Shown here piece by piece: positions 5,903 to 62,746 of a stretch of DNA of 64,000 nt (its first letter is position 1; each line of letters begins with the position of its first letter). The notes under the pieces are model-generated. The model was given only the letters and a program-made list of their open reading frames with translations, was not told the origin of the DNA and did not search any database. Source of the DNA: Octopus sinensis (taxonomy: Eukaryota); contig NC_043022.1 of the NCBI RefSeq assembly GCF_006345805.1, positions 22,134,001 to 22,198,000 of the forward strand, written 5' to 3'. Both the position numbers and the translations under genes were made by a program.

Positions 5903-6989
5903 CTTGAGTGAATCATCCAAGTGCAAGGAGCCAAAGACGACGACGACGATAATAACGGGAGCAAGATGTAGCGGCAACGGAACCGCAGCAGCAGCAGCAG
6001 CAGCAGTTGCTGAAATGGTTGGAGTGGGAGTAGACAACAGACAGTAATAGATAACGGTAGTAGGTAGGAGGGGTTGGAAAAATAATAATAATAAAGAGGC
6101 GAGGGAAGAGAGAAGTCGAAAGAGGCGGTAGGCGATAGTAGAGAGAGGGGCGGGAGGTACAGAAAGTGAAAGAGATAATAGAGATGTAGTGGAAAGTGAA
6201 AGAGAGAGTAAGGAGACGGGATAAGGAGGAAGCGGGAGAAGACGAGGAGGAGGTGACAAAGCGAAGAAAGTGAAAGAGAGGAAAAGAGAGAGTGGACAAG
6301 AGGGACAGGAGGAGGAGGAGGAAGAGAGAAACAAAACAAGAAGCAGATGGAGGTGGTGTGGAAGTGAAGTATGGACAACGCTAGGGATAACACAGGAAAT
6401 TGTGGTCAAGCTATCAACTAGAAACAGTAGCCAAACCTCCTTCAAACGGATAGGAACTACACTGAATAATGCAATTCGCTATATATATATATATATATAT
6501 AAAATATACACACACGCGCGCGCCAAGGGGGGATGGTTACACCTTTGATCATTTGCATGCTGAATCAGGGCTAAGACGGGGGTTAAACAACGGAGGAACT
6601 AATGAATACATGGGCATTTCCATTTAAAACACATAAAGAGATACATGTACACACATCAGCCTTCACATACGCATACTAACGGTAAAACATATACGAAACG
6701 ACAAACGCAAAAATTACGACAGGTAAATACAGAAGATACACAACACGTGTGAATGTCTGTTGTGTTTGCGTAAAATACGTAAGAAAAAACTTTCATACAC
6801 ACACGCAGACACAACATATTCACAGACACACTGCACTTATAGATTGAGTGAAGTTGTAATTTCCACGAAGTGGAGTGGTGCTTCGAGTGTTCCTGATCAT
6901 GTGAAGCGAGCTTATGGAAACATTAAGGTATGGGGGTGGAGCTTACAGAGCGAGGTGAGGTATTCTATCCGTCTGGAATAGAACGTACC

Positions 6990-7399
6990 GGATCTTTTCG
7001 GTTTGAACGGCAGTTTTTCTAGCGGTGTCATATGAAATTGTCACCCATAATTATGACCCTAGTATCGATCTATTGCATTTCAATCTGTTTTAGGGTTAGG
7101 GGTGGGGGGAAGGGTCTTTTTTTTCTTCAGAAATGTAAATAAACCCAATCTGTTTCTTAAACGTGGGACATATTCATACGGCACAGAATGTTTTTCACCT
7201 CAATAGACGTCATTGATTGGTTGAAATTGCAGAAATCGAAGTAAAAAAACAACAAATATCTTACAAACTATAGAATTTTCTCAATAAAGCCAAGAGAAAA
7301 AGATGTTTTATAAACACATTCTACCAGTATACGAAGTTTAAAAGTGTTTAGTTACGTGGAAATTATTTTAAAAAACTGCCGTTCAAACCGAAAAGATCC
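6990..7399 (+). mobile_element. Non-autonomous TIR element (GGATCTTTTCGGTTTGAACGGCAGTTTTT TIRs), flanked by ~100-bp direct repeats
   Basis: ~29-bp TIRs at both ends. 6885-6989 is repeated at 7400-7498, abutting both termini. Confidence 0.9.
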
Positions 7400-7650
7400 G
7401 AGTGTTCCTGATCATATGAAGTGAGCTTATGGAAACATTAAGGTATGGGGTGGATCTTACAGAGTGAGGTATTCTATCCGTCTGGAATAGAATATACCTT
7501 CTTATATCGTTGCATACGTGTGTGTGTGTATGTGTATACATATTAGCCGAATATTGTGTTGTTGGTGGATAATTCTCACAATATTGCTATGTGGGCGTGC
7601 TATTTCGAAAGTCCTTGGCAGACCTTCGGAATAGCACACCTGTATAAGTT

Positions 7651-8013
7651 GGATTTTCTCCGCTTTGACGGGGATTTTTCAGATTTGTTTGTTTGTTTTT
7701 TTATTTTATTTATTTATTTATTTTTTATATCAAAACCTTGCAAATTTTGAAAATTATAGAATTTTCTCAAACCTCACTCAGTAATGATTTTGGCCAATGG
7801 TTTTTTCGGAAAAAAGATTTGGAAATCAGTAAACACCATTACAACCTCAACTTCATTTTCAAAACAGAAAATAAAACGTAATTAAAAGCAATTGTGAGAT
7901 GAAGCCAAGAGAAAATGATGTTTTATAAACACATTCCACCAGTATACGAAGTTAAAAAATTTTTAGTTACCTAGAAATTATGTTAAAAACTGCCGTTCAA
8001 ACCGAAAAGATCC
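7651..8013 (+). mobile_element. Diverged relative of the GGATC-TIR element
   Basis: Right 110 bp (about 7903-8013) match the family end ...aaaccgaaaagatcc. A degenerate left TIR ggattttctccgctttgacggggattttt may start at 7651. No TSD seen. Confidence 0.5.
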
Positions 8014-11497: not shown

Positions 11498-12087
11498 CTC
11501 ATGTACAAGCAATTCTTGGTCACATCTACAAAGAATATCCCAATCACAGATAGGGATCTCTACATAGAACTTTTAATACAGAAAACTAAGGACTTTTATG
11601 TTTATATGTTCTTCGTTTACCATTTGGTTGTCTTTATATTTATTCTGTAGCTGATATATTCCCCAAGATATAATATATTGACCTAATGCGTTGTGAGTGA
11701 CATATATGTGTTTTTCATTTAAAACTAATTTCTTTCATACTTGTAGTTGGTAAAATGACAAGTGTCGTCAAATACATTTTGAGGAGAATTGTCAAAGCAC
11801 CAATTCCAAAGATATTTTCGTTTGATTCTCGTTTAATTTACTAAATTCAATTGACATTACATATAAATACAGGGGAGTAACCTCCCTTCGTTAATTAAGA
11901 CAGGCGCAAGAAAACATGAGTAAGGAGGTCAATTCTAAATTTTGGTCTAAAAGTTATCTGTCCCAAAGAGATGACAAGAATTAAATTTCTTATCTATTTC
12001 ATTTTAACTAATCTAAAGGAAGTATTCGATTTATGACTTAAGGTCATTGTGGAGGAAAGCAACGTCTTGTATCATTACAGCAAAGGG

Positions 12088-12617
12088 ATGAAGTCGATTA
12101 CATCGACCCCAGTGCGTAACTGGTACTTATTTAATCATCCCCGAAAAAGCAAAGTCGACCGCAACGGAATTTGAATTCAGAACGTAACGGCAGACGAAAT
12201 ATCTATTTCTTTACTACTCACAAGGAGCTATACACAGAGGGGACAAACAAGGACAGACAAACGGATTAAGTCGATTACATCGACCCCAGTACGCAACTGG
12301 TACTTAATTTATCGACCCTGAAAGGATGAAAGGCAAAGTCGACCACGGCGGAATTTGAACTCACAACGTAAAGACAGGCGAAATACCTATTTCTTTACTA
12401 CCCACAAGGGGCTAAACACAGAGGGGACATACAAGGACAGACATAGGTATTAAGTCGATTATATTTACTCCAGTGCGTAACTGGTACTTAATTTATCGAC
12501 CCCGAAAGCATGAAAGGCAAAGTCGACCTCGGCAGAATTTGAACTCAGAACATAACGGCAGACGAAATACGGCTACGCATTTCGCCCGGCATGCTAACGT
12601 TTCTGCCAGCTCGCCGC
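12088..12617 (-). repeat. SINE family B, one head plus three tandem bodies (period ~183 bp)
   Basis: Repeated CTATTTCTTTACTACYCACAAGG junctions near 12200 and 12385. Head ends at 12617. Confidence 0.85.
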
Positions 12618-13660: not shown

Positions 13661-13746
13661 TAATCAAATAGTAATTGCTCTGAAAATTAGTTGATCCCAA
13701 ACTCACTACAAATGGTATGTCCTCTATTGTTATTGAAAGGGCTCTG

Positions 13747-14663
13747 GGATCTTTTCGGTTTGAACGGCAGTTTTTTCTAGCGGTGTCATATGAAATTGTC
13801 ACCCATAACTATGACCCTAGTATCGATTTATTGCATTTCAATCTGATTTAGGGTTAGGGGTGGGGGGAAAGGTATCTTTTTTTCTTCACAAATGTAAATA
13901 AACCCAATCTGTTTCTTAAACGTAGGACATATTCATACGGCACAGAATGTTTTCACCTCAATGGGCGTCATTGATTGGTTGAAATTGCAGAAATTGAAAA
14001 AAAAAAACAACAAATATCTTACAAACCATAGAATTTTCTCAATAAAGCCAAGAGAAAAAGATGTTTTATAAACACATTCTACCAGTATACGACGTTTAAA
14101 AGTGTTTAGTTACATACTCTTTTACTTCTTTCAGTCATTTTGACTGCAGCAAATCGACCCCAGGACTTATTCTTTGTAAGCCCAGTACTTATTCTATCGG
14201 TCTCTTTTGCCGAACCGCTAAGTGACGGGGACGTAAACACACCAGCATCGGTTGTCAAGCAATGCTAGGGGGACAAACACAGACACACAAACACATACAC
14301 ACACATACATATATATATATATATACATATATACGACAGGCTTCTTTCAGTTTCCATCTACCAAATCCACTCACAAGGCATTGGTCGGCCCGAAGCTATA
14401 GCAGAAAACACTTGCCCAAGATGCCACGCAGTGGGACTGAACCCGGAACCATGTGGTTGGTTAGCAAGCTACTTACCACACAGCCACTCCTGCGCCTATA
14501 AAAGAATGCTTACAGCACCTAGGTTTCCCAAGCGGTCACCCATCTAAGTACTAACTAGGCTCGATTTTGCTTAACTTCAGACGAAAACCAGTGCTTTCAA
14601 TGTGATATGGCCGTAAGCCATGGAAATTATTTTTAAAAACTGCCGTTCAAACCGAAAAGATCC
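13747..14663 (+). mobile_element. Same TIR element with 8-bp TSD GGGCTCTG, interrupted by a SINE + 5S insertion (14114-14618)
   Basis: TIRs at 13747 and 14663. GGGCTCTG at 13739-13746 and 14664-14671. Confidence 0.9.
14508..14618 (-). pseudogene. 5S rRNA pseudogene with ~7-8 nt internal deletion
   Basis: Minus strand GCTTACGGCCATATCACATTGAAAGCACTGG...GAAGTTAAGCAA...TAGTACTTAGATGGGTGACCGCTTGGGAA...GGTGCTGTAAGC followed by ATTCTTTT. The CGATCAC segment is missing. Confidence 0.9.
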
Positions 14664-15489
14664 GGGCTCTGTCCTAAAGGCATTACAATAAATACATCTC
14701 CCACACACTCTGTGCATGTGTGTGTATACACACATACACGCCACAGAGAAAAATTACAAAAAAAGAAGAAAATGACATGACAGTCTTTTATTAATGGGAT
14801 CACCTCAAAAATATGAAACTCTATTGTCTCCAACAACCCTTATCCCTTTCTATTATAGGCACAAGGCTCGAAATTTGGGGGAGGAGGATAGTTGATTACA
14901 TCGACCCCAGTACTCAACTGGTTCTTATTTCATCGACCCTGAAAGGATGAAAGGCAAATTTGAACTCAGAACGTGAAGACAGACGAAATACCTATTTATT
15001 TACTACCCACAAGGGGCTACACACAGAGGGGACAAACAAGGACAGACAAACGGATTAAGTCGATTACATCGACCCCAGTGCATAACTGGTACTTATTTCA
15101 TCGACTCTGAAAGGATGAAAGGCAAAGTTGACCTCGGCGGAATTTGAACTCAGAACGTAGCGGCATACGAAATACTGCTAAGCATTTCGTCCAGTGTGCT
15201 ACCGATTCTGCCAGCTTGCCGCCTTTCCAACAACCCGTATCATTAATCAGATTCTCTCCGATGGAGTCATACCTAAAGATTGGTGTAGCATGGTTATTTC
15301 AACTGCTACAAAAGCAAAGGTGATGCCTTAGACAGAAATAATTTCAGAGGCATCAAATTGCTGGACCAGGTGATTAAAGTTACCAAAAAAGTCACAGCTC
15401 AATTAATTAGGAAGGGAGTTAGTCTCAATGAGATGCAGTGCAAGGAAGAAGCATTGGTGGTTTTGTGCAAGGAAGAAGCACCACCAATG

Positions 15490-17166: not shown

Positions 17167-18237
17167 TAGGGATGGTATTATTAAAATACCATCGCAAGTG
17201 GTAACCGAATTATCAGCTGTACAGGCAAATTAATAAAATATATACATACAATATTAGATATGTAAAAAGCACCCACTACACTCACGGAGTGGTTGGCGTT
17301 AGGAAGGGCATCCAGCTGTAGAAACATTGCCAGATTAGACTGGAGCCTGGTGCAGCCTTCTGGCTTCCCAGAACCCCGGTCGAACCGTCCAACCCATGCT
17401 AGCATGGAGAACGGACGTTAAACGACGACGACTTATCAATTTCTACAACTCACACCATCTGAAAATGACATTTTTCACAAAAATCATTATCACCCTCATT
17501 TAATGTCCGTTTTCCATGCTAGCATAGGCTGGACAGTTTGACAGGAGCTGGCCAGCTGAGGAGTTGCCCCCAGTTTCCATGTCTCTTTTGGCATGGTATC
17601 TATGGCTGGACGCCCTTCCTAATCCCAACCATTTTACAGAGTGTACGGGGTGCTTTTATGCAGCACTGGCACAGGTGCTCCGCCTTTGCCACAGGTTGGC
17701 CTGGTATAGCAATCTTCCAGGATTCAGCCCATCTCCCACCTGGGAGATAAAAATAAACTAGCACAGGTGTATTTATATGGCACTAGTACAGGTGCTTTTA
17801 ACATGACACCAGCACCCACAGCCCACAAGATTAGGAATGCTCAGCTGGAGAGGAACGCAGAGGATATGCCTGTATGCAAGGACAACCACAATTTTACTTT
17901 GCTTGGCGTTCTTCTCAAGCACAACTAACCACCTGGAATCCCAGACCCCTGTCTTCACCTCTGTGAGTCCCAACGTCTGTAAATCCTTTCACACCTATTT
18001 CTTTACTACCCACAAGGGGCTAAGCACAGAGAAGACAAACAAGGACAGAAAAACGAATTAAGTCGATTATATCGACCCCAGTGCGTAACTAGTACTTATT
18101 TAATCGACCCCGAAAGGATGAAAGGCAAAGTCGACCTCGGCGGAATTTGAACTCAGAATGTAACCGCAGACGAAATGCCGCAAAGCATTTCGCCCGGTGT
18201 GCTAACGTATCTACCAGCTCGCCACCATTTCATCCCA

Positions 18238-18470
18238 TTTCTACCTGGGCCTACCCCTTCCACCTGTACCCTCCACAATGAGAGAGCAACACCTCTTGAT
18301 GCAACTGTCTTCTTTCATACACATTACATGACCATACCAGCACAGTCTTCTCTCTTGCGCAGTACATTTGATGCCCTGTACACCCAGTTTTTCTCTCGAA
18401 TCACTTACACTCTTCATATGTGTCAATCACTTGTTACATATGCACACTGACATTACCCATCCAGTGGAGC
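18238..18470 (-). mobile_element. RTE LINE 3' fragment
   Basis: LREKLGVQGIKCTAQERRLCWYGHVMCMKEDSCIKRCCSLIVEGTGGRGRPR. Confidence 0.8.
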
Positions 18471-18476
18471 ATATTG

Positions 18477-18710
18477 GCGGCGAGCTGGCAGAATCGTTAG
18501 CACGCCGGGCGAAATGCTTTGCGGTATTTCTTCTGCCGTTACATTCTGAGTTCAAATTCCGCCGAGGTCGACTGTGCCTTTCATCCTTCCGGGGTCGATT
18601 AAATAAGTACCAGTTACACACTGGGGTCAATATAATCGACTTAATCCGTTTGTCTGTCCTTGTTTGTCCCCTCTGTGTTTAGCCCCTTGTGGCTAGTAAA
18701 GAAATAGGTT
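18477..18710 (+). mobile_element. SINE family B (GGCGGCGAGCTGGCAGAA head, GTCGAC..GCCTTTCATCCTTTCGGGGTCGA central domain); representative copy
   Basis: Other copies at 17995-18224(-), 31240-31425(-), 55999-56232(+), 56448-56665(-), 14880-15223(-), plus the arrays listed separately. Confidence 0.88.
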
Positions 18711-24947: not shown

Positions 24948-25785
24948 CAGTATAGTATACTGTATAGTAGTACTGTCTGCATATTTATATTATAATAGGT
25001 CAGATCTTATTATTCCAATGTGTTTGACACCAGAAATTAAGAAGCCAAAACAGATACATATAGTGATTAACCCATTAGTGTTCACATTATTCTACCAAAA
25101 TTAATGCTTCTTTATCCACATTGTTTTGAACTAATCATGTATTATCTTGTAGCTATGAGATTTTGATGAGGTAGCTGTTAGTTTTTAAAACGATATTGTA
25201 GGGTTGGTGTGAGAGACCAGATCTGGCCTGTTTGAACATAAAACAGGCAGAATACTTTTGGCCGGATATGGCCGGTTTAAATGCTAAAGGGTTAAGGAAA
25301 AAAATACATATATACAAATACATATACATATGATGGCTGATCAATAAGTATCCAGACTGTTGCCATAGTAACGAAGCTAAAACATGGGTGCACTTGACTT
25401 GATGGGTCTTCTTAAGCAGAGCACATCGCTAAAGGTCTTGGGCACTAGTCATTGCCTCTGTGAGGTTCAGAGTTCGAAGGTAATGCTTCACTGCCTCATC
25501 CCAGGTCTTCCTGGGTCTATGTCTACCACAGGTCCCCTCTACGGCTTTACTCTACATGCTTTACCTTCGTTACTATGGCAACAGTCCTTCTGGCATACAT
25601 ATCTTTTACTTTTACATATATATATTATTTATATCTAAATCTTATCTATATTTGTAAATCACATGTTCCATGTCAGATACTGGAGTGATATTTGATCACA
25701 TATCTCTCTCTCTCTCTCTCTCTCTCTCCCTACATATATACATATATATATATTATATATATATATATATAATATATATATATAT

Positions 25786-25838
<53 letters not shown>

Positions 25839-26268
25839 GTCTGGAGCCTCACAGCTCAATAAATTTTTTACACGCAGGCGTGGCTGTGTGGTAAGAAGCT
25901 TGTTTCTCAACCACATGGTTCTGGGTTCAGTCCCACTCTGGTGCACCTTGGGCGAGTGTCTTCTATTTTAATCTCAGGCCGACCAAAGCCTTGTGAGTGG
26001 ATTTGGTAAGACTGAAAGAATCCTGTTGTACATATATATATTTGTGTGTGTGTGTGTGTGTATCTGTCTCTGTCTCCCCGCCATCGCTTTGACAACCGAT
26101 GTTGGTGTGTTTATGTCCCCATAATGATTCGGCAAAAGAGACTGACAGAATAAGTACTAGGCTTACAAAGAATAAGTCCTGGGGTCGATTTGTTTGATTA
26201 AAGGTGGTGCTCCAGCATGGCCCCAGTCAAATGACTGAAACAAGTAAAAGAGAAAGAATATACATACA

Positions 26269-26315
<47 letters not shown>

Positions 26316-26342
26316 CACACAACACACACACACCATATATAT

Positions 26343-29115
26343 ATATTGAGCTTGGCTCTTCGTCCCTCCAACGGCGCGCTGACATTATCATCAAACCGGC
26401 TGACAAGGGTGGAGCTGTAGTGGTGTGGCGCGCGGACCTCTATAGGGCCGAGGCTTTCCGCCAACTCAATGACACCTCCTTCTATTCCCCTCTGCCCTCT
26501 AACCCCACACGTAGCTACCAACAGACGGTATCCTCTACCGTCCAAGACCTCATCTCGTCCTCCCGTCTCCCCCCGCACCGCATCCAACCTAATTGTGCGA
26601 ACCCCACGTACCCCCACCATTTACTCCTCCCCAAAATCCACAAACCCAAAACCCTGGCCGCCCCATCGTCTCCGCCTGTAACTGCCCCACGGAGCTCATC
26701 TCTAAATACCTTGACCGTGTCCTTGCCCCCCTAGTGGCATCTCTTCCCTCCCACATCCACGATACCAACCATGCTCTCCGGCTTTTCAACTCTTTCTCCT
26801 TTCCTCCCGGCCTCCAAAATCCTTTTTACTATGGACATCCAAAGCCTCTATACTGTTATCCCTCACCACGAAGGACTGCAGGCCCTTCGACACTTTCTTG
26901 ACCTCCGCTCTAACCCTGTACCTGACACCTCCACACTCATTGTCTGGCCGAACTTGTCCTTACTCTGAACTGCTTCTCGTTCGCGGGCGAGTTCTACCAT
27001 CAGGTCTCGGGAGTGGCCATGGGAACGCGAATGGGCCCCAACTATGCGAACCTGTTCGTTGGCTATGTTGAGGCCCAAATATTCTCTAATTTCACTGGTC
27101 CCACTCCTGAACTATATGGTCGTTATATTGACGACATTATCGGTGCCACCTCACTCTCCGCGAGCATCTAGATTCCTTCCTCTCTTTCGTCCAATCTTTC
27201 ATCCAGCCCTCCACTTCACTTCCACTATCTCCAACACCTCTGTCTCCTTCCTCGACATTCGGTTAGCATTCTTCACTCCACTCTTACCACCTCCATTCTC
27301 TACAAACACACAGACTCACACTCATACCTCAACTTCTCTTCCTCCCACCCAGAACACACCAAGCTTTCCATCCCCTATTCCCAATTCCTCCGTCTACGTA
27401 GGCTCTGTAGTGACGACCATGACTTTGAGACTCAGTCTCAACGTATGGCTCACCACTTCACCCTACGTGGATACCCCCTCACCACTATCCACACCGCCCT
27501 TGCCAGAGCACGGTCCGTGGACCGTGTATCTGCTCTCTCTCCCCGAACCCGCCCTGTAGTCTCCCGCCTCCCTTTTCCCCTCACTTACCACCCCACGACC
27601 TATACGTCTCCAACGCACCATTCTTCGAGCTTTCCGTCATCTCCAGTCCGACCCGTCCACTTCACACCTCTTCCCTAACCGACCCCTCCCCTCTTTCAAA
27701 CGAGCCCACAACCTTCGAGACCTTTTGGTCCATAGCTCCTTCCCTGACCCTACCTCCCAACCCGGCTCGTTCCCCTGCTCCCGCCCACGTTGCCGCACTT
27801 GCCCTTACCTCTCCAACACCACCCGCCTCACTAGCACCCACCATCGACCCTATCCCATCATCCACTCCTTCACCTGCACCTCCAGCAATATTATCTATTG
27901 CATCTCTTGCTCTCTCTGCAATTCCTTGTACATCGGACAAACGGGACGCCGCTTGGCTGACCGGTTCGCGGAACACCTTCGTGACATCCACCTTGCGAAC
28001 GACACACGGTCTCACGCCATTTCCGCTCCACCGGTCACTCCTTGCAACACCTATCTGTGTTCGGTTTGTCCTTACACAGAGGCCATCCGGATTCCCGTTT
28101 GCGCCGTGAACAAGAATTAATCTTCTCTCTTCGCTCTATACGCCATTTGGTCTCAACTCTCCCCCCTCCTCATCTAACTCCCCTCCTCCCCCCTCCTCAC
28201 CTATCCTTTCCCCCCGACCCCTACTTCTTCAGTCCTTCATCCTTTCACCCCTACTCCCTTCCCTTCTTCCCTTTCTCCCTCCCTCTTCCCCTTCCTCTGC
28301 TCCCTCAATCCTCCTCTCCCCTCTCCCTCTTTCCTCCTTCATCCCCCTCCTCCCCTTCCTTCTCCCCCATCCTCTCCTCTCCCCTTCTCTCCCTCTTCTT
28401 CCCCTCCCCTTCTCTCCCCCCCTTTTCCTCACTACACCACATGACCTTACACATCACATCACATATGATGTGCCATACTAATACATACACCAACGAAAAC
28501 ATATAATACGTACTAATACATACTAGTACATACTAATACTTACACCAACCCTATACATACACATGTCCAGACCCCGCATACGCACTTATACTCTCTCACA
28601 CACACACACACATACCTATACATACCAATACGTACTAATACATACTAATACATACTAATACATACACCAACCCCATACATACGCACGTCCAGACAATCTT
28701 ACGCACTAATACTCTCTCATACACACACACACACACACACACCCTTATACATACTAATACATACACCACCCTATACATACACACATCCAGACCCCTCCCA
28801 CGCACTTTTAGCTGGTCCCTCAACCCTTTTATCAACCCTATTATCTCCCTTATTTCGCTCTCGCGTCTCATGTTTGATCTTTGACCTCTGGCCGAAATCA
28901 GATCGCCATGTTGATTCGTTAGCTACTGCACGCATTTTTTTTCTCTCCTTCTTTCTGTGTTTTTCTCTCTCTGTGTATCTTTCTGTTGAAGAGCGTAGGC
29001 TCGAAACGTTAAAGACTTGTTTTATTTATATTTCCTGAGCGCCATACTAATACAATTGTTCGTTTGTTTTCCACCTGCCTTCGTCTTTTGTTTATTTTCA
29101 TAAAGCTTCCCGTTA
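26343..29115 (+). mobile_element. Penelope-like retroelement (RT + GIY-YIG), 5'-truncated and frameshifted, with 3' tandem repeats and hammerhead-bearing pLTR-like end
   Basis: Stitched frames give IIKPADKGGAVVVW, LLPKIHKP..PGRPIVS, TMDIQSLYTVIPH, GVAMGTRMGPNYANLF, YGRYIDD, SIPYSQFLRLRRLCS, SNIIYCISC..C..LYIGQTGRRLADRFAEH. C/T-rich tract 28150-28430, ~110-bp tandem units 28480-28810, hammerhead-like motif 28978-29015, flanked by (TA)n. Confidence 0.93.
28978..29015 (+). ncRNA. Minimal type-I hammerhead-like motif in Penelope 3' pLTR
   Basis: TCTTT-CTGTTGA-A-GAGC(GTAG)GCTC-GAAACGTT-AAAGA: stem I TCTTT/AAAGA, stem II GAGC/GCTC, palindromic AACGTT. Core A6 is replaced by U. Confidence 0.65.
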
Positions 29116-30549: not shown

Positions 30550-33500
30550 CGGGAAGCTTTACACACATACATACATACACACATATATGTATATACATAC
30601 ACACATGTAGTCAATACATAGAGTGCTTATATTTTATTTCAAGTTGAAGCCTCTTGAAACATAACTTAGTTTCATATTCCATTTGGTTCAAATTAAATCC
30701 TTTGCACAGGTTATCAAGTTATGAGCTACAAAGTTATTCAGAAGTTTAAACTTTACACACACAGACACACACAACCACAAACACACATGTTGATTGCCAT
30801 TGCTTATCAGAAGAGTGCCTCTCTTCACTGGACATTGCACAATCATGTACATGCAGGTGGCTCTTCAGCCCAGATTTCTGTTCTGCAGGAACATTCACAG
30901 ATATGACACTTGTTTCTCTTTCCAGTACAAGTGTACCATAGAGTGTGTTACAGTAGAACTATTTCACAAGCAGCTTGATTCCTACCTGGCTCATGTGACT
31001 TCAGGTTGCAGAAAAAAACTCAGCTCTTGAGAAGATAAATTGTTCACATATATTGCACCTGTAAATTTGAACTATATACATTCCTGCTGGGTTTCTTCAG
31101 GTATTGTACTTAAGATAAGGTCTACTATCAAAGAGATAAGTATAAGAAAATCTCGTGGTTTGGATAGAACACCAGTTGTGCTGATTTGCTTTGAAGGAGA
31201 TAATGTTGCTATATACTTTTCTACGCGAGGCACAAGGCCCGAAATTTTTGGGAAGGGTGCCAGTCGATTAGATCAACCCCAGTACACAACTGGTACTTAA
31301 TTTATCAACCCCCGAAGGGAAGAAAGGCAAAGTCAACCTTGGTGGAATTTGAACTCAGAACCTAAAGACAAACGAAATACCACTAAGCATTTCGCCCGGT
31401 GTGCTAACGTTTCTGCCAGCTCGTCAATAATGTTGCTATATAACCAGTTATATCTGGAAGGCATAACAAATCTGTCCTATAAGATTGGGTAGATGTAACT
31501 ATGCTTTCCATTTACAAAGGCAAGGGCTCCGAATGTGGTGGTTATTGAGGTATAAAATCGCTCAAATTGGTAATTTTCGTTATCCCAGAAACAGCTGTAA
31601 GACTTCAAATTCACCTTACTGTAACTGAATTATTCTAAATGACTTGAGACACACACATACTCTACATGCACATGTGCATACAAACTTTCTGCCTTGGTTT
31701 TGATGTTCCCTCTAATAATATATATATACATGGTATAAAGATCTCTAACATGGATCCCTAGATCCACCCTTAGCTGTGATCTTAGAACCTAATGGTTGAC
31801 CAACTATAGCACTTACCCAGCGTATCTATTCATTTAGATCACAAGTGAACTAAAGCCCCTCATATTCTTGATACATACATACACACACACACACATACAT
31901 ATATATATCCGAGAGTGATCGTTGCCAGATCAAGATTGAAGCCTGGTGCAGCCATCTGGTTCGCCAGCCCACAGTCAAACCGTCCAACCCATGCTAGCAT
32001 GGAAAGCAGACGTTAAACGATGATGATGATGATATATACACACACACACATATGAATATACATATATATATGCAGGTTCAAGATTCATGTAATTTTAAAT
32101 TACTTGTTGAGGACTTTAATTGATTCATAGTTAGTTAATTTAAGATGTGTTTTGTGGAATCCATGTGTGTCTAGTTAACACACATACGGACATATAGTTG
32201 AACACACAAACAGATAATTTGTATTGAAAAAATGTCAGTCAACATGATGCAAGCAACTAAAACCACATCAATATAGCGTTCTGCCATATGACTTTCATGT
32301 TAGATAGACATATACATACTCTACATGCACATACAAACATATGTACATACACAACACATGAATATATGTGTACATGTATATGTACACACACACATGCATG
32401 CACACACACACATGTACACTCACACCTTACTTTGTGAGTCAACAAAGAAGCCTTTATGTATTGTTCACTTGCTGAAAACAGTTGGCAAATCTCCCTCATA
32501 ATCAGTCTTATCTCGTATATAACACAACTGTCTTCAACAAGGAAGGATATATTGGGTGGTGTCCTAGATAGACAATGCCTGAAAAGAAAACAAAGCTGCA
32601 TGCCTACATACATCAATACACATGCCTACCTGTACTAACATATGATTAACCCTCCAGCATTTAAACCAGCCGTGTCTGGCCCAAATATTCTACCTGTTTC
32701 GTGTTCAAACTAACCATATCCAGTATCTCACACTTACCCTGTAATGTCAGCTTTAAAATAAACAATTACGGTGGCACGTTAAAAGCACCAACCGATCGTG
32801 GCCGATGCCAGATCCCCCTGGCACTTGTGCAGGTGGCACGTAAAAAGCACCCACTACACTCGCGGAGTGGTTGGCGTTAGGAAGGGCATCCAGCTGTAGA
32901 AACACTGCCTGATCAGACTGGAGCCTGGTGCAGCCCTGGCTTCCCAGACCCCGGTCGAACCGTCCAACCCATGCTAGCATGGAAAACGGACGTTAAACGA
33001 TGATGATGATGATGATGAATTACATCTTCAAAATCTCTAAGCTACAAGATAATACATGATTAGTTTTGAAAAATGTGAATAAATAAGCGTTACAATTGAT
33101 AGAGTAATCTGAATGCTAAAGGGTCAAACTGGGTTTCTGTTAGTTTCAACAAGGAGTGTCATCATTTTAAAATCAATTGAAGTATATAACTGCAAATGCC
33201 CGAGTATTCCACAGACAGGAGTGGCTGTGTGGTAAGTAGCTTGCTAACCAACCACATGGTTCCGGGTTCAGTCCCACTGCGTGGCATCTTGGGCAAGTGT
33301 CTTCTGCTATAGCCCCAGGCCGACCAATGCCTTGTGAGTGGATTTGGTAGACGGAAACTGAAAGAAGCCTGTCGTATATATGTATATATTTATATATATG
33401 TATGTGTGTCTGTGTTTGTCCCCCTAGCATTGCTTGACAACCGATGCTGGTGTATTTACGTCCCCGTCACTTAGCGGTTCGGCAAAAGGGACCGATGGAA

Positions 33501-38092: not shown

Positions 38093-39527
38093 GAACCTTC
38101 ATAAGGGGAGAGAAAGAGAGAGAGTGTGTGTGTTTTCTCACATTGCTGTCTGCTATAGCCTGAGATGACATAGTTGTTGAAATCTCTTCCTCAGTTTAGA
38201 AATGTGTCAGGCAAAGGCTTGACATACTTCTGAACAGACAAAGAAATGGAAGAAGCAAAAGATAAGAGATAAAAATAGGTTTGATGATTTAAGCTGTTGG
38301 TGGGAGAAAGAGAAACACAGACAGACAGACAGAGATTTATCACCTACAACTCTGTGTGTGTGTGTGTGTATGTGTGTGGGTGTGTATGTGTGTGCATGTG
38401 TGTGTGTATGTGAGTGTGTGTGAGTGAGTGTGTGTGTGTGTGAGTGAGTGTGTGTGTGAGTGAGTGAGAGTGTGTGTGTGTGTGAGTGTGTGTGTGAGTG
38501 TATGTGTATGTGTGTGGATGTATGCATGTGTGTGTGTATGTGTGTGTATGTGTGTGCGTGCATGTGTGAGTGTGTGTGTGAGTGAGAGTGTGTGTGTGTG
38601 TGAGTGTGTGTGTGTGTGTGCATGTGTGTGTGTGTGTGTGTGAGTGAGTGTATACACCCACACAAACACACACAAAGTTGTGTAGACAGAAGTTCATATG
38701 TTTAGATGACTTTATTATCCTCTAAGCAACAGCAAAAAGAACCTGAGGTTTCTGGGACTGCCCCTTTGTGTGTGGGTGTGTGTACATACATATGTGTGTG
38801 TGTGTGTGTGTGTGCCTGCATACACACATGTATGTATCTGTACATATATATGTACACACAGATACATACATGTATGTATGCAGGTGCACACACACATATA
38901 CACAGATACATACATGTATGTATGCAGGCGCACGCACACACACACACGCACGCACACGCACACACACACACACCACACACACACACACACACACGTATAA
39001 ATTGATAGAGGAGGGCGGGGAAGACCTGAGTATTATTCAGCAGCTGACTTTTTAAACAAAAACAAGGAAAAGTTGCCTTTGATAATAATGAGAACATTTC
39101 CCTCACACTTCCACATTCACTCTCTTATGACCTAATGTCTAACTACCAGCAAACCTACACATATCTTTTCATTTTTTTTTGTATCAGAATTTTCATCCTC
39201 TGCACCCAGATTGCAATTTGAGGGATATTTGGCTACTATGTCTAACTGCTTGAGCAACCACATATACAGTGCCTCATTGATCCTAATGTTTTATTCTACT
39301 GCTGTTGCTTAACTCCAAGCCAGCTCTGTCTGATAGAGCAGTCCTATGACCAAACGGAGCCTCAGATCAGCTCTGATTGAGCAAACCTTTAACCCTAATA
39401 CGCTGATTATCTGTCAAATGTAATGCTTAATCAATCATACTGCTTTTAAATTAATTATGCAATATCTTATAACTTTGAGATTTCAGTAATGCAGTCATTT
39501 TTTTAAAAATGACATTGTAGGGTTTAA

Positions 39528-39746
39528 CCCTTTAGTATTTAAACCGGCCATATCCGGCCAAAATAGTTAATCTGTTTTATGTTCAAACTGACCAGATCCA
39601 GGCTCTCACACCTACCCTACAATGTTATTCTACATTAGGTAATTACACCATCAAGATCTTGAAGATATGAAATAATGCATGATTAATTCAAATCAATGGG
39701 AATCAATAGGCATTATGTTTGATAGAATAATCTGAACACTAAAGGG
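39528..39746 (+). mobile_element. piggyBac-like MITE family 2; other copies at 32650-33123 (+, SINE-interrupted), ~25000-25291 (-) and ~55597-55750 (-)
   Basis: TTAA|CCCTTTAGYATTTAAACCGGCCATATCCGGCC ... TAAAGGG|TYAA. Confidence 0.75.
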
Positions 39747-39804
39747 TCAAACATAAAATAAGTAAAATGTTTGAGCCAGATATGGTTAGTTTAAATAATA
39801 AAGG

Positions 39805-40222
39805 GGATCTTTTCGGTTTGAACGGCAGTTTTTTCTAGCGGTGTCATATGAAATTGTCACCCATAATTATGACCCTAGTATCTATCTATTGCATTTCAAT
39901 CTCTTTTAGGGTTAGGGTTTGGGGTGGGGGAAGGGTATCTTTTTTTCTTCAGAAATGTAAATAAACCCAATCTGTTTCTTAAACGAGGGACATATTCATA
40001 CGGCACAGAATGTTGTTTACCTCAATGGACATCATTTATTGGTTGAAATTGCAGAAATTGAAGAAAAAAAACAACAAATATCTTACAAACTATAGAATTT
40101 TCTCAATAAAGCCAAGAGAAAAAAGATGTTTTATAAACACATTCTACCAGTGTATGAAGTTTAAAAGTGTTTAGTTACGTGGAAATTATATTAAAAAACT
40201 GCCGTTCAAACCGAAAAGATCC
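39805..40222 (+). mobile_element. Same TIR element with 20-bp direct duplication
   Basis: GTTAGTTTAAATAATAAAGG at 39785-39804 and 40223-40242. Confidence 0.9.
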
Positions 40223-40504
40223 GTTAGTTTAAATAATAAAGGGGTAATCTAAGGGAACTCCAGGTCAGTTTTGAATAAACATGCCTATGATCTGTCTACA
40301 CATTATCAAGTTTTGGTGAACTCAACTGGGATAGCAGTTTCTTATTTTAGACATCAATTTTAAGAGGAGAGGATTATTCAGTGTCATTGACCCCAGTAAT
40401 TGACAGGTGGCTTTAAAGGGTGAAATAATTCTTTCTAATACAAGTCCAAGGCTTGAAATTTTGAAGAAGGGGGTTAGTCAATTACATCATCCCCAGTGCT
40501 CTGC

Positions 40505-41048
40505 TGTTACGTTCTGAGTTCAAATTCTGCTGAGGTCAACTTTGCCTTTCATCCTTTCGGGGTCGATTAAATAAGTACCAGTTACGCATTGGAGTCAATG
40601 TAATCGACTTAATCCGTTTGTCTGTCTTTGTTTGTCTTCTCTGTAATTAGCCCCTTGTGGGTAGTAAAGAAATAGGTATTTCGTCTGCCGCTACGTTCTG
40701 AGTTCAAATTCCACCGAGGTCAACTTTGCCTTTCATCCTTTCGGGGTTGATTAAATAAGTACCAGTTACGCATTGGGGTCAATGTAATCGACTTAATCCA
40801 TTTGTCAGTCCTTGTTTGTCTTCTCTGTATTTAGCCCCTTGTGGGTAGTAAAGAAATAGGTATTTCGTCTGCCGCTACGTTCTGAGTTCAAATTCCACCG
40901 AGGTCGACTTTGCCTTTCATCCTCTCGGGGTCGATTAAATAAGTACCAGTTACGCATTGGGGTCAATGTAATCGACTTAATCCATTTGTCTGTCCTTGTT
41001 TGTCTTCTCTGTGTTTAGCCCCTTGTGGGTAGTAAAGAAATAGGTATT
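40505..41048 (+). repeat. Tandem array of SINE family B bodies, period 184 bp, 3 units
   Basis: Junction AAAGAAATAGG|TATTTCGTCTGCC at 40675, 40859 and 41043. Confidence 0.9.
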
Positions 41049-41763
41049 TATTTTATCAACCCTGAAAGGCTGAGAGGCAAACTTGATCATGGCAGAATTT
41101 GAACTTAGAACATAAAGACAGGCAAAATGCTACAAAACATTCTGCCTGGCATGTTAACAATTCTGCCAGCTCACCACCTTAATAATAACAATGATTTCAA
41201 ATTTTGGCACAGGGCCGGCAATTTCAAGGGATTAAACTAACTCCAGTGTTCAACTGGTACTTATTTTATCAAACCTGAAAGGATGAAAGGCAAAGATGAT
41301 CTCAGTGGAATTTGAACTCAACATAAAGACAGGTGAAATATCATTAACTACTGCTGATGAACATTTCTTGTCTGCTACTGATACCCCTGTGATTTTATGC
41401 ACCTGATCTCTGAGAGACTTTCTTGGGGCTAGTACTGCAGTATTAGGCACTCCTATAATACACCCACATTAAGTCGGATATAAAGGTTGCTTTTCAGTAA
41501 TAATGTTACATCATCGCTAATGGCTAATAATTATTATTGTTTCTAATTTAAGCATAAGGTCAACAATTCTAAGGGGAGGGATAATCAATTAAATTCATTC
41601 CAGTACTTGATATGTACTTTTATCTACTCCCCATAAAGGATTTGAACTCAGAATGCAACGAGCTGAAAGAAATATCGCTAAGCATTTTATTCATAATGTT
41701 GTTGTGTAGGTGTCCAAGTCAACCCTGACTATTCCAGGAGCCCTATAATCAAAAGGCATTTAA

Positions 41764-46614: not shown

Positions 46615-48973
46615 CTGAAAAAGTTATAATTTTTTTTTAAATAACAAAAAACTTTTTTTTACAGTCTATGTTTATGTATATAAAATTTTTTAAAAGAAAA
46701 TATTTAATTTACAGAAATATTTGAGGATTAATTTATTTTAAAAGACAACAATAACAGTAACAGCATAAAACAGCTTCTTGTCCCTTCTGTGTGATATTCA
46801 TTTAACTTGTGTATGTGTGTATATGTATTTAAGTCATTCAAAGATACCAAATATGAACTAACGGCAAGAGCAACAACTACATAGATCTATATGTGTAAAT
46901 GCATGGTTCTTTGAGATCGGAATTTTGCATTGCAGAATTCAAGTTGGTCACCAGCAAAATGGCAAAGCTGATTATGCTTATATCAAGAGAGTTCTTGCAG
47001 GGTTTGTGGTTATCTGAATTGGTTGGTGTGTGTGTGTGAGTGAGAGAGAAAGAGAGAGAGAGAGAGCGCATGTCACATTAGAATACATGTGAACATTCTC
47101 TGCTACTGTTTATGTCTGTGTATTCTATATATGTATATATATATTGGTAAAAACGCTAAGATAACAAAAGAAAGAAAGAGACCTCAATATTATGTAAATA
47201 AAGGAAATTTATATATATATATATGTGCGTGTGTGTGTGTGTTTGTGAGAGAGAGAGTGTGAGAGAGAGCGCATGTCACATTAGAATACATGTGAACATG
47301 CTCTGCTACTGTTTATGTCTGTGTGTATCATCATCATCATCTTCGTTTAACGTCCGCTTTCCATGCTAGCATTCGTTGGACGGTTTTGACTGAGGGCTGG
47401 CAACCAGATGGCTGCACCAGGCTCCAGTCTTGATCTGGCAGAGTTTCTACAGCTGGATGCCCTTCCTAACACCAATCACTCCGAGAGTGTAGTGGGTGCT
47501 TTTATGTGCCACCTGCACGGATATGTGTGTTCTGTATATGTATATGTGATTGTGTGCATATGTTCACTCAGGGACCTCAACTGGAAAGCCCTGAAATGTT
47601 TTACAAATTTTTGTTGTACCTCTACTCAAATATATTTGGAGAATGTGAATCAGTCTGCTTTTTTGGAGATGGGGGACCCTAAACACTTCTCTTGTTACAC
47701 AGCCAAGTGCATCTGTGAATATCTTTTATCTTTGTTTCATCACTGGACTGCAGCCATACCTTGAAGGTGACACCAGTACTTTTTCTAAAAGCCTGGTACT
47801 AATTCTATCAATCTCTGTTGACGAACTGCTAGATTATGGAATGTGAACAAACCAACACTGGTTGCAAAGCATTGGTGGATTACAAACACAAATACACAAT
47901 GGACTTCTTTCAGTTTCCATCTACTAAATCCACTAACAAGTTTGGTCAGCTGATGGTGATAATAGAAGACACTTTCCCAAGGTGCCACACAGTGGGATTG
48001 AACTTGAGACTATGTGGATGGGAAGCAAACCTCTTACCAGAGAGCCATGCCTGGAACAAATGTAAATCTATACCATGGATATAAGAGCTGTAGGTTTCTC
48101 ATTAATTGTCCAGAGATGTTCTTTATTTTTGATGCATGTGTATACACACATATGCATGCATGTGTATATATATTTCTTTGTTGCTTGTAGATGTGTGTAA
48201 GTATATCAATATGAATGCATATTTGTTTGCATTGCATGTTTGTATTGTCGGCATATATGTGCATGCTTGTATATGTATGTGCATACATGTTAAGAAGGCA
48301 ATGAGCACAAAAAAGGCAACATGGGAGAGACAATATGTACATGCATAAAACTTTAAATTTATCAAATAAAAATTAATCTAATTATTGAGGAGACAGAAAG
48401 AAAGGCAGAAAGAAAGGAAGATGAACAGAGAAAGACAGATGGACAGAAAGTTTGACTAGAAATCTTCACAATTTTTAATATATACATTTCTAATATCAAT
48501 TTTAGATCCGTCTGTCTATCTGTCTGGATGTTTGTCAATTTATATATCTAATTGTATTTTTCAACATTAGGAAACACTGTCACCTATTAACTCCATTCCA
48601 ATCCAATCCCAGCCTTGAGAATGCTGTCTCCATGTCTCAACTTAAACTAGAAGATTCTATGACAGAATTAAAAAAAAAAAAAAAAGGAAATTAAGGGACT
48701 CAAAAGTTATCCAGTCAAGATGAAAAGAAATAAATTTGGAGCTTTTCTTTTTTAAAATAAAAGGGACCTTTTCATATTGAAACCCATGCCTATTTGGTCA
48801 ACATTGAAAAGGGACAGATGTTTGACATGAAGGATTAACCAATTTCATTGGTCTCTGAGAGTCTACTAAGCTCATGAGCAAGGCTCCTTACTCCATAGCA
48901 AAAAGGAAAATGAAAAGCTTTATAAAACACTATGGATTAAACTGAAAGTAAGCATAAATAGAAGAAAACTTAC

Positions 48974-49497
48974 CGTTTTCTTGTAACGGACACTGCCACT
49001 CCTTTTAAGTGTACCTCCTTTCACAACATCAGCTTGGACTTCAATTTTAACTCCATCAGCAGCAGTACGAACACTAAGTTCCAAAAGTTCTGGAACTGGT
49101 TGAACCTTCAATACAACAGTGTCTGAAGATGTACGAATCAATTCAATTATTTCCTCTCTCTTGGCCTTCTCCACATTTTTATCATTAACTTCAATCAGAC
49201 GGTCTCCGGGCAGTAAACCGGTCTCAGTAGCTTTTGGTCCCGTGCCAGGTTCTGCAAAGATCACAGTTTGCTTTGAACCAAAGCAATCTGTGTTAGTTCG
49301 TTGCATGATGACTCCTTTACGAAGAGAGAAACCAAAATCACCTCCAGGTTGCCGCCGCAGGGTTAGGGTCCGGATACGTCCAGGCCGGGGAGGAATTATG
49401 GAAGGTAAGTGAAGATCAAAATCGAATGTCTTTTCGGCAGGGCTCAAAGGAACGGGTCCAGGTGTTTCTTCTGGTGGTGAGGTCATTTTTGGGTGTT
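48974..49497 (-). CDS. MYO18A: Coding exon of unconventional myosin-18 (MYO18A-like), N-terminal PDZ domain
   Basis: Translation contains RRQPGGDFGFSLRKG...VIFAEPGTG...GLLPGDRLIEVN..NVE..KREEIIELIR.S.DTVVLKVQPVPELLELS, matching the MYO18A PDZ as I recall it (GDFGFSLRR..HFAEPGAG..GLVPGDRLVEING..LKVQPIPELSEL). Acceptor ttttcttattttatcatag ends at 49498 (phase 1). Donor ACG|GTAAGT at 48973 (phase 0). Confidence 0.92.
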
Positions 49498-55467: not shown

Positions 55468-56960
55468 CATACATGATGATTTTCACTTCTTTACAGAAGA
55501 AGGTCATCTCTTTAATTAGCAAATGCCATCATGAGATCTCATGTGACTAGCAACTCTAGCTTTGGACAAACAGACTCTGTTGCAGATATTACAAATACTT
55601 ATTTATTCACATTGTTTTTTAATTAATCATGCATTATCTTGTAACTTCAGGAGTGTGGGCACGAGAGACCGGATCTGGCAAGTTTGAACATAAAACAAGT
55701 AAAACACACATTTTAGGCCAGATATGGCCAGTTTAAATGCCACAGAGTTAAGGTTGCTTTTCATGGCATCCCTAAAATGTTTCTTAAGTTTATGTCTTGA
55801 ACATTTACCATGTGGCAACTCTCCATTAAAAATTTGTCATCCAGCATCGTAGTAAGGTGTCCAGCCCAGTACATCTGACATCATATGAAAAGAATTTCAA
55901 TGTGTTGGCCCACTCAAGATCAATGGTGTCTGGTGTTAGAAACTGCGTATATACATACAACACACTCATTCATCCTCATTTATATAGAAATACTATCAAA
56001 GGCAGCGAGCTGGCAGAATCGTTAGCACGCCGGGCGAAATGCGAAGCCGTATTTCGTCTGCCGTTACATTCTGAGTTCAGATTCCGCCGTGGTCGACTTT
56101 ACCTTTCATCCTTTCGGGGGTCGATAAATTAAGTACCAGTTTCGCACTGGGGTCGATGTAATCAACTTAATCCCTTTGTCTGTCCTTGTTTGTCCCCTCT
56201 ATGTTTAGCCCCTTGTGGGTAATAAAGAAATATATAGAAATACTATCAAATGAATACACAAACACACCGATTGCTGTGATACCAGATTCAAATCTATTGC
56301 GCAGTACCTTAGGCTAATGCCTTCTACTAGAGCCTCAGGCCAAGGAAAGCCTTATGATTGAAGCTGAGTAACTGGGAACTGTACAAAAGGTTGCAGGATT
56401 GGTTGTAGCTGTTCTGGAATAATCTGTCATTTGATGTAAAACTACCCGTTTCTTTACTACCCACAAGGGGCCAAACACAGAGAGGACAAACAAGGACAGA
56501 CAACGTCGATTATATTGACCCCAGTGCATAACTGGTACTTATTTAATCGACCCCGAAAGGATGAAAGGCAAAGTTGACCTCGGTGGAATTTGAACTCAGA
56601 ACGTAGCAGCAGACGAAATACTGCTAAGCATTTATCCTTGCGTGCTAATGTTTCTGCCAGCTCGCCTACCACCTGGCTCTTGGGCCCCTGACTGACATCA
56701 GAGTAGAGCCCCCTATCATATCAGAGCTCCAGGTCTAGGGTTAACTCAATGAATAGACGTACTGCTTCTTCCTACAAAGTAACTTCGAGTAGCTATAGGA
56801 GTTGTGATTTTTTCTTTTTGTCTTCTTCACTCCAACTGCCTCAAAGGCCATGTAGAGAGGAATCATGAGCACTGGGTTGGCTTGTCTCAGTCAGCTTCTC
56901 TTTCTGTGCATGTGTGTATGTGAGTGTATGTTTATTTTTTATATATATGTGTGTGTGTGT

Positions 56961-61540: not shown

Positions 61541-62746
61541 TTGGGTTGGTAACTAAGTTCCCACCGTTTTTTTTTAATTTTGGAATCTATTTTGTTTTTT
61601 TTCTAGCTAATTTTAGTTAATTTTTGTTTATTTTAAGATCATTAAAACGGAATGTCAAGTTAAGAAAAATGAGCATTTTTGACACCTCTTTCTTTTTGCT
61701 TTTAATTAAATGCTCATGACATTTGTGCTGTGTATGGAGAGGGTGCAATAGCTGAAAGAACCGCTCGTGATTAGTATGCCAAGTTCAAAAATGGAAATTT
61801 TGACCTCAAAGACACACCTCGTTCTGGCCATCCAGTTGAGTTCAATGAAGAGCGATTAAACCAACTTTTGCATGAAAATTCTTGTCAAATGACAAGGGAA
61901 CGGGCAGAGAAAATAGAATGCTCCACACTGCTATAGAAAAGCATCTTCACTTGATGGGAAAGGTTCAGAAGTATGGAGCATGGGTTCTGCATGCTTTAAG
62001 TGACGACAACAAAAATCAACGAGCCACAATCTCCGCTGGTTTGCTTGCTCATCACTGCTCAACTCATGGACACAAGCAACAATTTCTTTACCGAATCATT
62101 ACTGGCGACGAAAACTGGTGCCTGTACATCAATATGAAGCAGCATAAGGAATTGCTTAGCCCCAGTAAACAAGCGACACCATGTGTGAAACCAGATCATC
62201 ATCTGTGTAAAACAATGTTGTGTGTATGGTGGGACTGGGAAGGGATTATCCATTACGAATTGCTTGAACAGAACCAAACAGTCAATGTAGAACTCTATGT
62301 TCAACAGATGGAACGACTCAACATGGATATTCAAGAGAAAAGACCTAATCGGCAGTATGGAGTTCTTCTGCTGCACGACATCGCCCGCCCTCATATCGCC
62401 AATATGACCAAGGAAGCCATTCAAACGCATGGCTGGGTAGTGCTGCCACACCTGCCGTACTCTCCTGATTTGACGCCAACGGATTTCCACCTCTTTCGCT
62501 CTCTTTCAAATGCTGTGCGTGGAGTTTCGTTCAATATTGATGCAGAATTGAGAGCTTGGTTGGATCAATTTTTCAAGTCGAAATCGGGTGATTTCTACCA
62601 ATAAGGTAGTGAAAATCTTGTTGAATGTTGGGAAGAAGTTGTAAACAACAAGGGTGAAAACATTATTGATTAATTAGTTATTTTTTATTAAACCTTTAAA
62701 AAAATTTAGATTTAAAAAAACAGCAGGAACTTAGTTGCCGACCTCA
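61541..62746 (+). mobile_element. Mariner DNA transposon, decayed D,D34D transposase
   Basis: ~28-bp imperfect TIRs with TA flanks. WVLHALS (WVPHEL), ITGDENW, HDIARPH, YSPDLTPTDFHLFRSL. Stops and frameshifts present. Confidence 0.93.

Follow-up and report, generated by a model that had tools for sequence, protein, structure and literature searches.

Direct repeats of 8, 20 and about 105 bp abut the termini of a MITE family in Octopus sinensis

Introduction

Each eukaryotic TIR superfamily is assumed to have a characteristic, fixed length of target-site duplication (TSD), which serves in classification, and software for finding MITEs usually limits the duplication to about 10-11 bp. Merlin, for example, is defined by TIRs of 24-462 bp that begin 5′-GG, duplications of 8-9 bp and a DDE_Tnp_IS1595 transposase (PMC8101967), and Merlin families have been annotated in Octopus vulgaris (PMC8101967, PMC13282606).

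Long flanking repeats of variable length have been described in other types of element. The prokaryotic insertion sequences IS1549 and IS1634 are flanked by repeats of 8-514 bp depending on the copy, for which there is no accepted mechanistic model (PMC2266710). The endogenous retrovirus HERV-K (HML-2) normally makes a duplication of 5-6 bp and occasionally one of 13-450 bp; such long cases account for 8 of 451 sites (about 2%), and for those of 111 and 250 bp the empty allele has been verified (PMC5488345). Among non-LTR and Penelope-like retroelements, duplications reach 126 bp for rotifer R9 and a median of 900 bp for Chlamydomonas Dualen (PMC9977147). Here we analyse a 64-kb stretch of the Octopus sinensis genome, referred to below as the window, in which a family of short TIR elements is flanked by direct repeats of strikingly different lengths.

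Results and discussion

Five copies of one MITE family in the window

We found the 29-nt TIR GGATCTTTTCGGTTTGAACGGCAGTTTTT 8 times in the 64-kb window against 0.00 expected, with 7 of the 8 instances identical. These instances define five copies of one octopus MITE family, which are 91-95% identical overall and, for the complete copies, 94-96% identical to one another. Three copies are complete, carry perfect TIRs and lie on the plus strand: one of 410 bp at 6990-7399, one of 418 bp at 39805-40222 that is 94% identical to the first, and one at 13747-14663 that is split at about 14114-14620 by a nested insert. The other two are a partial copy on the minus strand at 1-245, which is cut by the window start and has its left end at 245 and a TIR with 2 mismatches, and a solo right-end fragment on the plus strand at 7899-8013, which corresponds to element positions 295-410 at 91% identity and ends in a perfect right TIR. 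This fragment of 116 bp is an older truncated MITE copy, 500 bp downstream of the copy at 6990-7399. A further 27-bp match is possible at 7744-7770, separated from the fragment by 128 bp of unrelated sequence.

The TIR starts GGATCTTTTCGG and reads GGATCNTTTCGGTTTGAACNGCAG, with its reverse complement at the opposite end. Its arms measure 29-30 nt and are 100% complementary in the 3 complete copies; in the 410-bp copy they occupy 6990-7018 and 7371-7399, or reach 6989 and 7400 when counted as 30 nt. GGATC/GATCC is the common stop of all 4 left and all 4 right ends, beyond which the flanks differ. Unlike the TIRs, the interior differs by 4-6% between complete copies.

No coding or structural RNA signal was evident in the element. 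The longest ORF in the complete copies is 63 amino acids, and six-frame ORFs had no match in a set of 5.8 billion proteins. Neither an Rfam match at E≤1 nor a tRNA-like match (ARAGORN) was obtained, and the complete copies have no poly(A) or simple-repeat tail at either end. The element is thus a non-autonomous class II TIR element (MITE) of the octopus genome: perfect TIRs, identical termini, the lack of a long ORF, of an Rfam or tRNA-like match and of a tail all fit a cut-and-paste MITE. A retrozyme bearing a hammerhead or other ribozyme was considered and dropped, given the absence of any Rfam match. Near element position 100, every copy carries a telomere-like (TTAGGG)2 followed by a G-run (7090-7106, 13849-13866, 39908-39930 and the matching part of 1-245), with an additional GGGTTT unit in the copy at 39805-40222.

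Flanking repeats differ in length and abut the termini exactly

Direct repeats flank each of the 3 complete copies and measure 8, 20 and about 105 bp (105/99 nt). Around the copy at 6990-7399, the left repeat of 105 nt spans 6885-6989, its last base directly before the left TIR, and the right repeat of 99 nt spans 7400-7498, its first base directly after the right TIR. A preliminary description of this locus had given these boundaries and their exact abutment to the TIRs, and every position holds. It had also counted 5 substitutions and 2 indels between the two repeats, which our alignment confirmed, the indels being of 1 nt and 5 nt; the pair is 89.5% identical over 105 columns (BLAST, E=2e-34), and 3 of the 5 substitutions are CpG-to-TpG/CpA changes in the right copy. 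The shorter duplications that it reported for sibling copies were recovered as perfect repeats: GGGCTCTG at 13739-13746 and 14664-14671 on either side of the copy at 13747-14663 (8 bp), and GTTAGTTTAAATAATAAAGG at 39785-39804 and again at 40223-40242 around the copy at 39805-40222 (20 bp). The latter would measure 22 bp if the next GG, which also matches the first two bases of the element, were counted.

In 3 of 3 complete copies, the inner edges of the repeats coincide to the base with both element termini. An alternative boundary shifted by one base (GATC...GATC) was rejected, as the repeats would no longer abut. The 105-bp repeat was not found elsewhere in the 64 kb, the 20-bp sequence occurs exactly twice, and no flanking repeat recurs anywhere else in the window. 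When the window was scanned de novo for TIR pairs with an abutting repeat of at least 6 bp, only the octopus MITE family was returned, so the window offers no control family.

A fixed, family-specific TSD length is expected of MITEs; here the lengths were 8, 20 and 105/99 bp, values that rest on 3 informative copies in a window picked for looking odd, so that a look-elsewhere effect applies. A helical-phase pattern in 8, 20 and 105 was considered and dropped, three values being too few.

We asked whether the repeats might be unlinked to the element, arising by chance, from a pre-existing tandem duplication split by the insertion, or from faulty assembly of a heterozygous insertion. None of the three repeats can be due to chance: the probability of an exact abutting match is 1.5e-5 for the 8-mer and 9e-13 for the 20-mer, and the E value of the 105-bp pair is given above. 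In favour of a split duplication, the 105-bp pair is more diverged than the age of the element predicts, and on its face would be an older duplication. However, for such a split the insertion would have had to hit the unit boundary precisely and to make no duplication itself, twice in three copies. Insertion with an 8-bp duplication into an older tandem repeat would need a third partial unit or an extra 8-mer; no 8-bp repeat is present at the junctions of the 20-bp and 105-bp cases, nor is a third unit, and this route is therefore excluded by geometry. As for an artefact, the junction of the right element end with the start of the repeat can be assembled only from reads that contain it, and with such reads the structure is real. 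An origin of the repeats independent of the element is thus highly improbable, and the junction geometry links the duplication causally to the element termini.

In maize, Zhang and Peterson reportedly described alternative transposition of Ac/fAc, in which a full element and a nearby fractured one generate direct duplications that flank the element; these duplications are said to be kilobases to megabases long and to need two elements. The octopus locus is similar in having a solo right end 500 bp from the 105-bp case. Unlike Ac/fAc, the 20-bp case has no second element nearby, and the composite 6990-8013 (full copy plus solo end), which we tried as a candidate element, has no flanking repeat of its own.

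The 105-bp repeats appear older than the element between them

The copy at 6990-7399 looks young. It has 2-3 private substitutions in 410 bp relative to its sibling copies and keeps all of its about 12 CpGs. Its flanks differ at 5 sites plus 2 indels in ~100 bp, against an expected 1-1.5 differences. The divergence of flank versus element gave Poisson P=0.003-0.016 and Fisher P=0.04-0.12, and the 105-bp repeats thus appear somewhat older than the young element between them. This tension might stem from a higher CpG density in the flanks, from a consensus built on few copies, from gap filling that was error-prone or from later gene conversion of the element.

The age comparison bears on the reading in which a fixed 8-bp duplication is canonical and the 20- and 105-bp repeats are secondary. 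Two routes could produce them. In the first, transposase cuts one end of an inserted copy and excision is left incomplete; the broken flank pairs, by way of the 8-bp duplication, with the opposite flank on the sister chromatid or homologue, copies a stretch of it and is rejoined to the intact element end. In the second ('pseudo-TSD'), crossing-over takes place within the element between same-orientation insertions lying a few to about 100 bp apart on homologues, a model proposed for the long HERV-K duplications (PMC5488345). One of the 3 copies does have exactly 8 bp, which is what Merlin, hAT and P-type elements would be expected to make (PMC8101967), and the presence of an older family member 500 bp away from the 105-bp case indicates that repeated hits at this locus do occur.

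Against this, secondary extension predicts repeats younger than the element, whereas the 105-bp pair appears older. Extension might explain one locus, but both routes are rare and long repeats flank 2 of 3 copies; both element ends are also perfectly intact in every copy. The pseudo-TSD route in particular needs two independent insertions 12 bp apart (20-bp case) and 97 bp apart, with misaligned crossing-over inside a 410-bp element each time, which is very improbable. We consider secondary extension, by either route, unlikely.

Proposed joining of element ends at variable spacing

We favour the interpretation that the flanking repeats are target duplications produced by joining of the element ends at variable, sometimes very wide spacing, and give it a probability of about one half. 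Anatomy, exact junctions and membership of a multi-copy TIR family can be read directly from the DNA; we infer that the duplications date from the insertion, that their length follows from a spacing determined by the transposase, and that such spacing is typical of the family. In this scheme, a high-copy MITE would be mobilised in trans by a transposase encoded outside the window. Both 3′ ends of the excised element would be joined to opposite target strands, with the joints or nicks 8, 20 or about 105 bp apart, and filling of the single-stranded gaps would duplicate the sequence between the nicks. The spread of lengths implies a loose spatial coupling between the joining of one end and that of the other, similar to IS1549/IS1634, and not a stagger of constant width.

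Several observations argue for end joining at variable spacing. Because the repeat edges meet the termini in 3 of 3 copies, a process that ignores the termini is an unlikely source. The long HERV-K duplications indicate that the background rate in eukaryotic integrase-type elements is not zero, but at a HERV-K-like background of ~2%, long duplications in 2 of 3 copies would have a probability of about 0.001. The precedent among DDE-type enzymes (IS1549/IS1634, HERV-K) also counts for this explanation. On the other side, full-text literature searches returned no report of a eukaryotic TIR superfamily with long variable duplications; such absence is not proof, and it makes the prior low. Independent attack by the two ends should also give target deletions about as often as duplications. 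None of the 3 copies shows a target deletion without duplication, a sample size that is uninformative on this point.

A stronger form of the same idea, namely that an animal cut-and-paste transposase, possibly Merlin/IS1595-like, routinely joins its ends tens to more than 100 bp apart, is put forward tentatively, and we would not bet on it.

No candidate for such an enzyme lies in the window. The MITE TIR is absent from the 64 kb outside the five copies, and no autonomous partner is present there. A mariner-type remnant at 61882-62604 (PF01359, E=3e-21), the sole transposase remnant in the window, is unrelated to the MITE. The search for further copies and empty sites of the MITE brought up neither: the ORF spanning the left flank of the copy at 6990-7399 is not on record, and a 303-amino-acid ORF 400 bp upstream of this copy had no match. 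Searches with the TIR pattern gave 0 matches in metagenome contigs and viral contigs. Across 596 Gb of sequence from bacteria and archaea, an 18-nt TIR core had 50 matches, all single and scattered, with ~17 expected by a rough estimate, and no paired matches; we treated the matches as noise. The TIR strings were found neither in the literature searched nor in the supplement of the O. vulgaris repeat paper.

These results bear out the preliminary description in placing the autonomous partner outside the window, and it is right that long repeats of variable length have been described for IS1549/IS1634 (PMC2266710). Its central proposal, a eukaryotic TIR transposon with variable, staggered target cleavage, stands in part: the octopus element is a non-autonomous TIR element with abutting repeats of 8, 20 and ~105 bp, but cleavage as their cause is not established; extension after insertion or capture at host-made breaks gives the same end product.

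Exact termini weigh against capture by the host and against retrocopying

Capture at host-made breaks would have the excised element re-inserted by host end-joining into breaks with long 5′ overhangs, formed by two nearby nicks, so that fill-in of the overhangs and not the transposase sets the duplication length. This would give variable lengths without a preferred value, and no target consensus is visible at the eight MITE junctions. End-joining, however, usually nibbles or adds bases, whereas 6 of 6 junctions of the complete copies keep exact GGATC/GATCC termini with no filler. Nor do the MITE ends of the three complete copies share any consistent microhomology with their targets, an observation that speaks against joining mediated by microhomology. 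Accidental capture, moreover, would hardly build up a family to 5 copies per 64 kb, and we regard host capture as quite unlikely.

A retrotransposition origin was weighed on the same evidence. Here the copies would be retrocopies made by target-primed reverse transcription, the endonuclease coming from a LINE or a Penelope-like element. In both types of element, duplication length varies as a rule, with the R9 and Dualen lengths cited above as examples (PMC9977147), and depends on how far apart the nicks in the first and second strand lie. The window does contain LINE reverse-transcriptase fragments and, from a weak GIY-YIG match, a probable Penelope-like element, and the fragment at 7899-8013 keeps one end only, as a 5′-truncated retrocopy would. 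Non-LTR and Penelope-like elements, however, lack TIRs, have a defined 3′ tail and are often 5′-truncated, whereas the octopus MITE is tailless and ends on either side in the same sequence, inverted. All full copies have exact termini and perfect 29-30-nt TIRs, no poly(A) or simple-repeat tail follows either end, and there is neither a tRNA-, 5S- or 7SL-like head nor an Rfam match. T-runs terminate RNA polymerase III, and those lying directly inside both MITE TIRs would stop the polymerase in either orientation. Described 'retro-DNAs', for their part, are without TIRs and carry poly(A) (PMC11195612). Taken together, we hold a retrocopy origin to be very unlikely.

Comparison with described systems

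Similar to Merlin, the octopus MITE has a TIR that begins 5′-GG, and its 29-30 nt fall within 24-462 bp. Its duplication is 8 bp in 1 of 3 copies, with 20 and ~105 bp in the other two. hAT and P elements also make about 8 bp, so a Merlin assignment is not specific, and the window has no DDE_Tnp_IS1595 transposase to link with the element. Judged by its sequence features, the octopus MITE is best kept as an unclassified TIR/MITE family for which Merlin is only a lead, given by the GG termini and one 8-bp duplication.

IS1549/IS1634 are the closest functional analogue, being TIR elements whose copies carry direct repeats of varying length. They differ in being prokaryotic, autonomous and 1.5-2 kb long, with an IS4-related DDE transposase, whereas the octopus MITE is 410 bp and non-coding; there is no sequence relationship between them, the TIR core matches being scattered and single. 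Most members of the IS1634 family, moreover, make 5-6 bp. The octopus MITE thus resembles IS1549/IS1634 in behaviour only and is not a member of that family. HERV-K offers the eukaryotic parallel of a DDE-integrase element with occasional long flanking repeats, but it is an LTR retroelement and not a TIR transposon, and its long cases make up ~2% against 2 of 3 in the octopus MITE.

If end joining at wide, variable spacing is routine, every insertion of this abundant octopus MITE would also make a small tandem duplication of host DNA; the family would then be the eukaryotic equivalent of IS1549/IS1634 and would generate short segmental duplications as a matter of course. Were the pattern to hold genome-wide, the family would be a eukaryotic TIR transposon without a fixed target-duplication length. 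A family ranging from 8 to more than 100 bp would break the fixed-length rule, and standard pipelines would under-detect or misfile it. With up to about 100 bp of host DNA copied at each insertion, such a family could affect the duplication of exons and regulatory sites in cephalopods, whose genomes are roughly two-thirds repeats (PMC13282606). Should the long cases be rare accidents, the finding shrinks to an ordinary 8-bp MITE with two curiosities.

Other features of the window

The nested insert in the copy at 13747-14663 (14114-14620, ~507 bp) combines a 5S rRNA-like and a SINE-like part. The 5S rRNA-like part, at 14507-14618 on the minus strand, scores 80 bits over the full model length and is fused, head-to-tail, with a SINE-like body that includes a tRNA-type B-box region. 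The edges of the insert show no duplicated MITE sequence, and its make-up resembles that of a chimeric 5S-SINE retrocopy produced by template switching.

Another MITE family, unrelated to the first, is represented at 39524-39755; its flanks are TTAA and its inverted ends start CCCTTTAG, and we take it to be piggyBac-type. Relatives lie at 25064-25295 (minus strand), 32646-32747, 33018-33129 and 55594-55751 (minus strand). The copy at 39524-39755 ends about 30 bp to the left of the duplicated 20-mer of the copy at 39805-40222, and its paralogues are therefore not usable as empty sites for that insertion.

A GC-rich (51%), strongly C-skewed block with ORFs spans 26000-28500 and includes a weak GIY-YIG endonuclease match at 27725-28120 (21.4 bits, just under the Pfam cut-off); it is probably a Penelope-like retroelement. 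A repeat of ~180 bp occurs in tandem and inverted pairs at 12077-12617, 14890-15223, 17993-18709, 40500-41320 and 56005-56665, with arms of up to 235 nt that are 90-92% complementary, and is either a high-copy SINE-like element or a satellite-like family.

An exon-like ORF at 48920-49486 on the minus strand corresponds to the first coding exon, with a PDZ domain, of a myosin-18-like gene. Its product shares 96% identity with an O. bimaculoides protein that likewise reads into the intron, and the cluster of that protein contains one short Logan contig only, from a third octopus species. The MITE copies are downstream of this exon on the minus strand and may sit in introns of the myosin-18-like gene.
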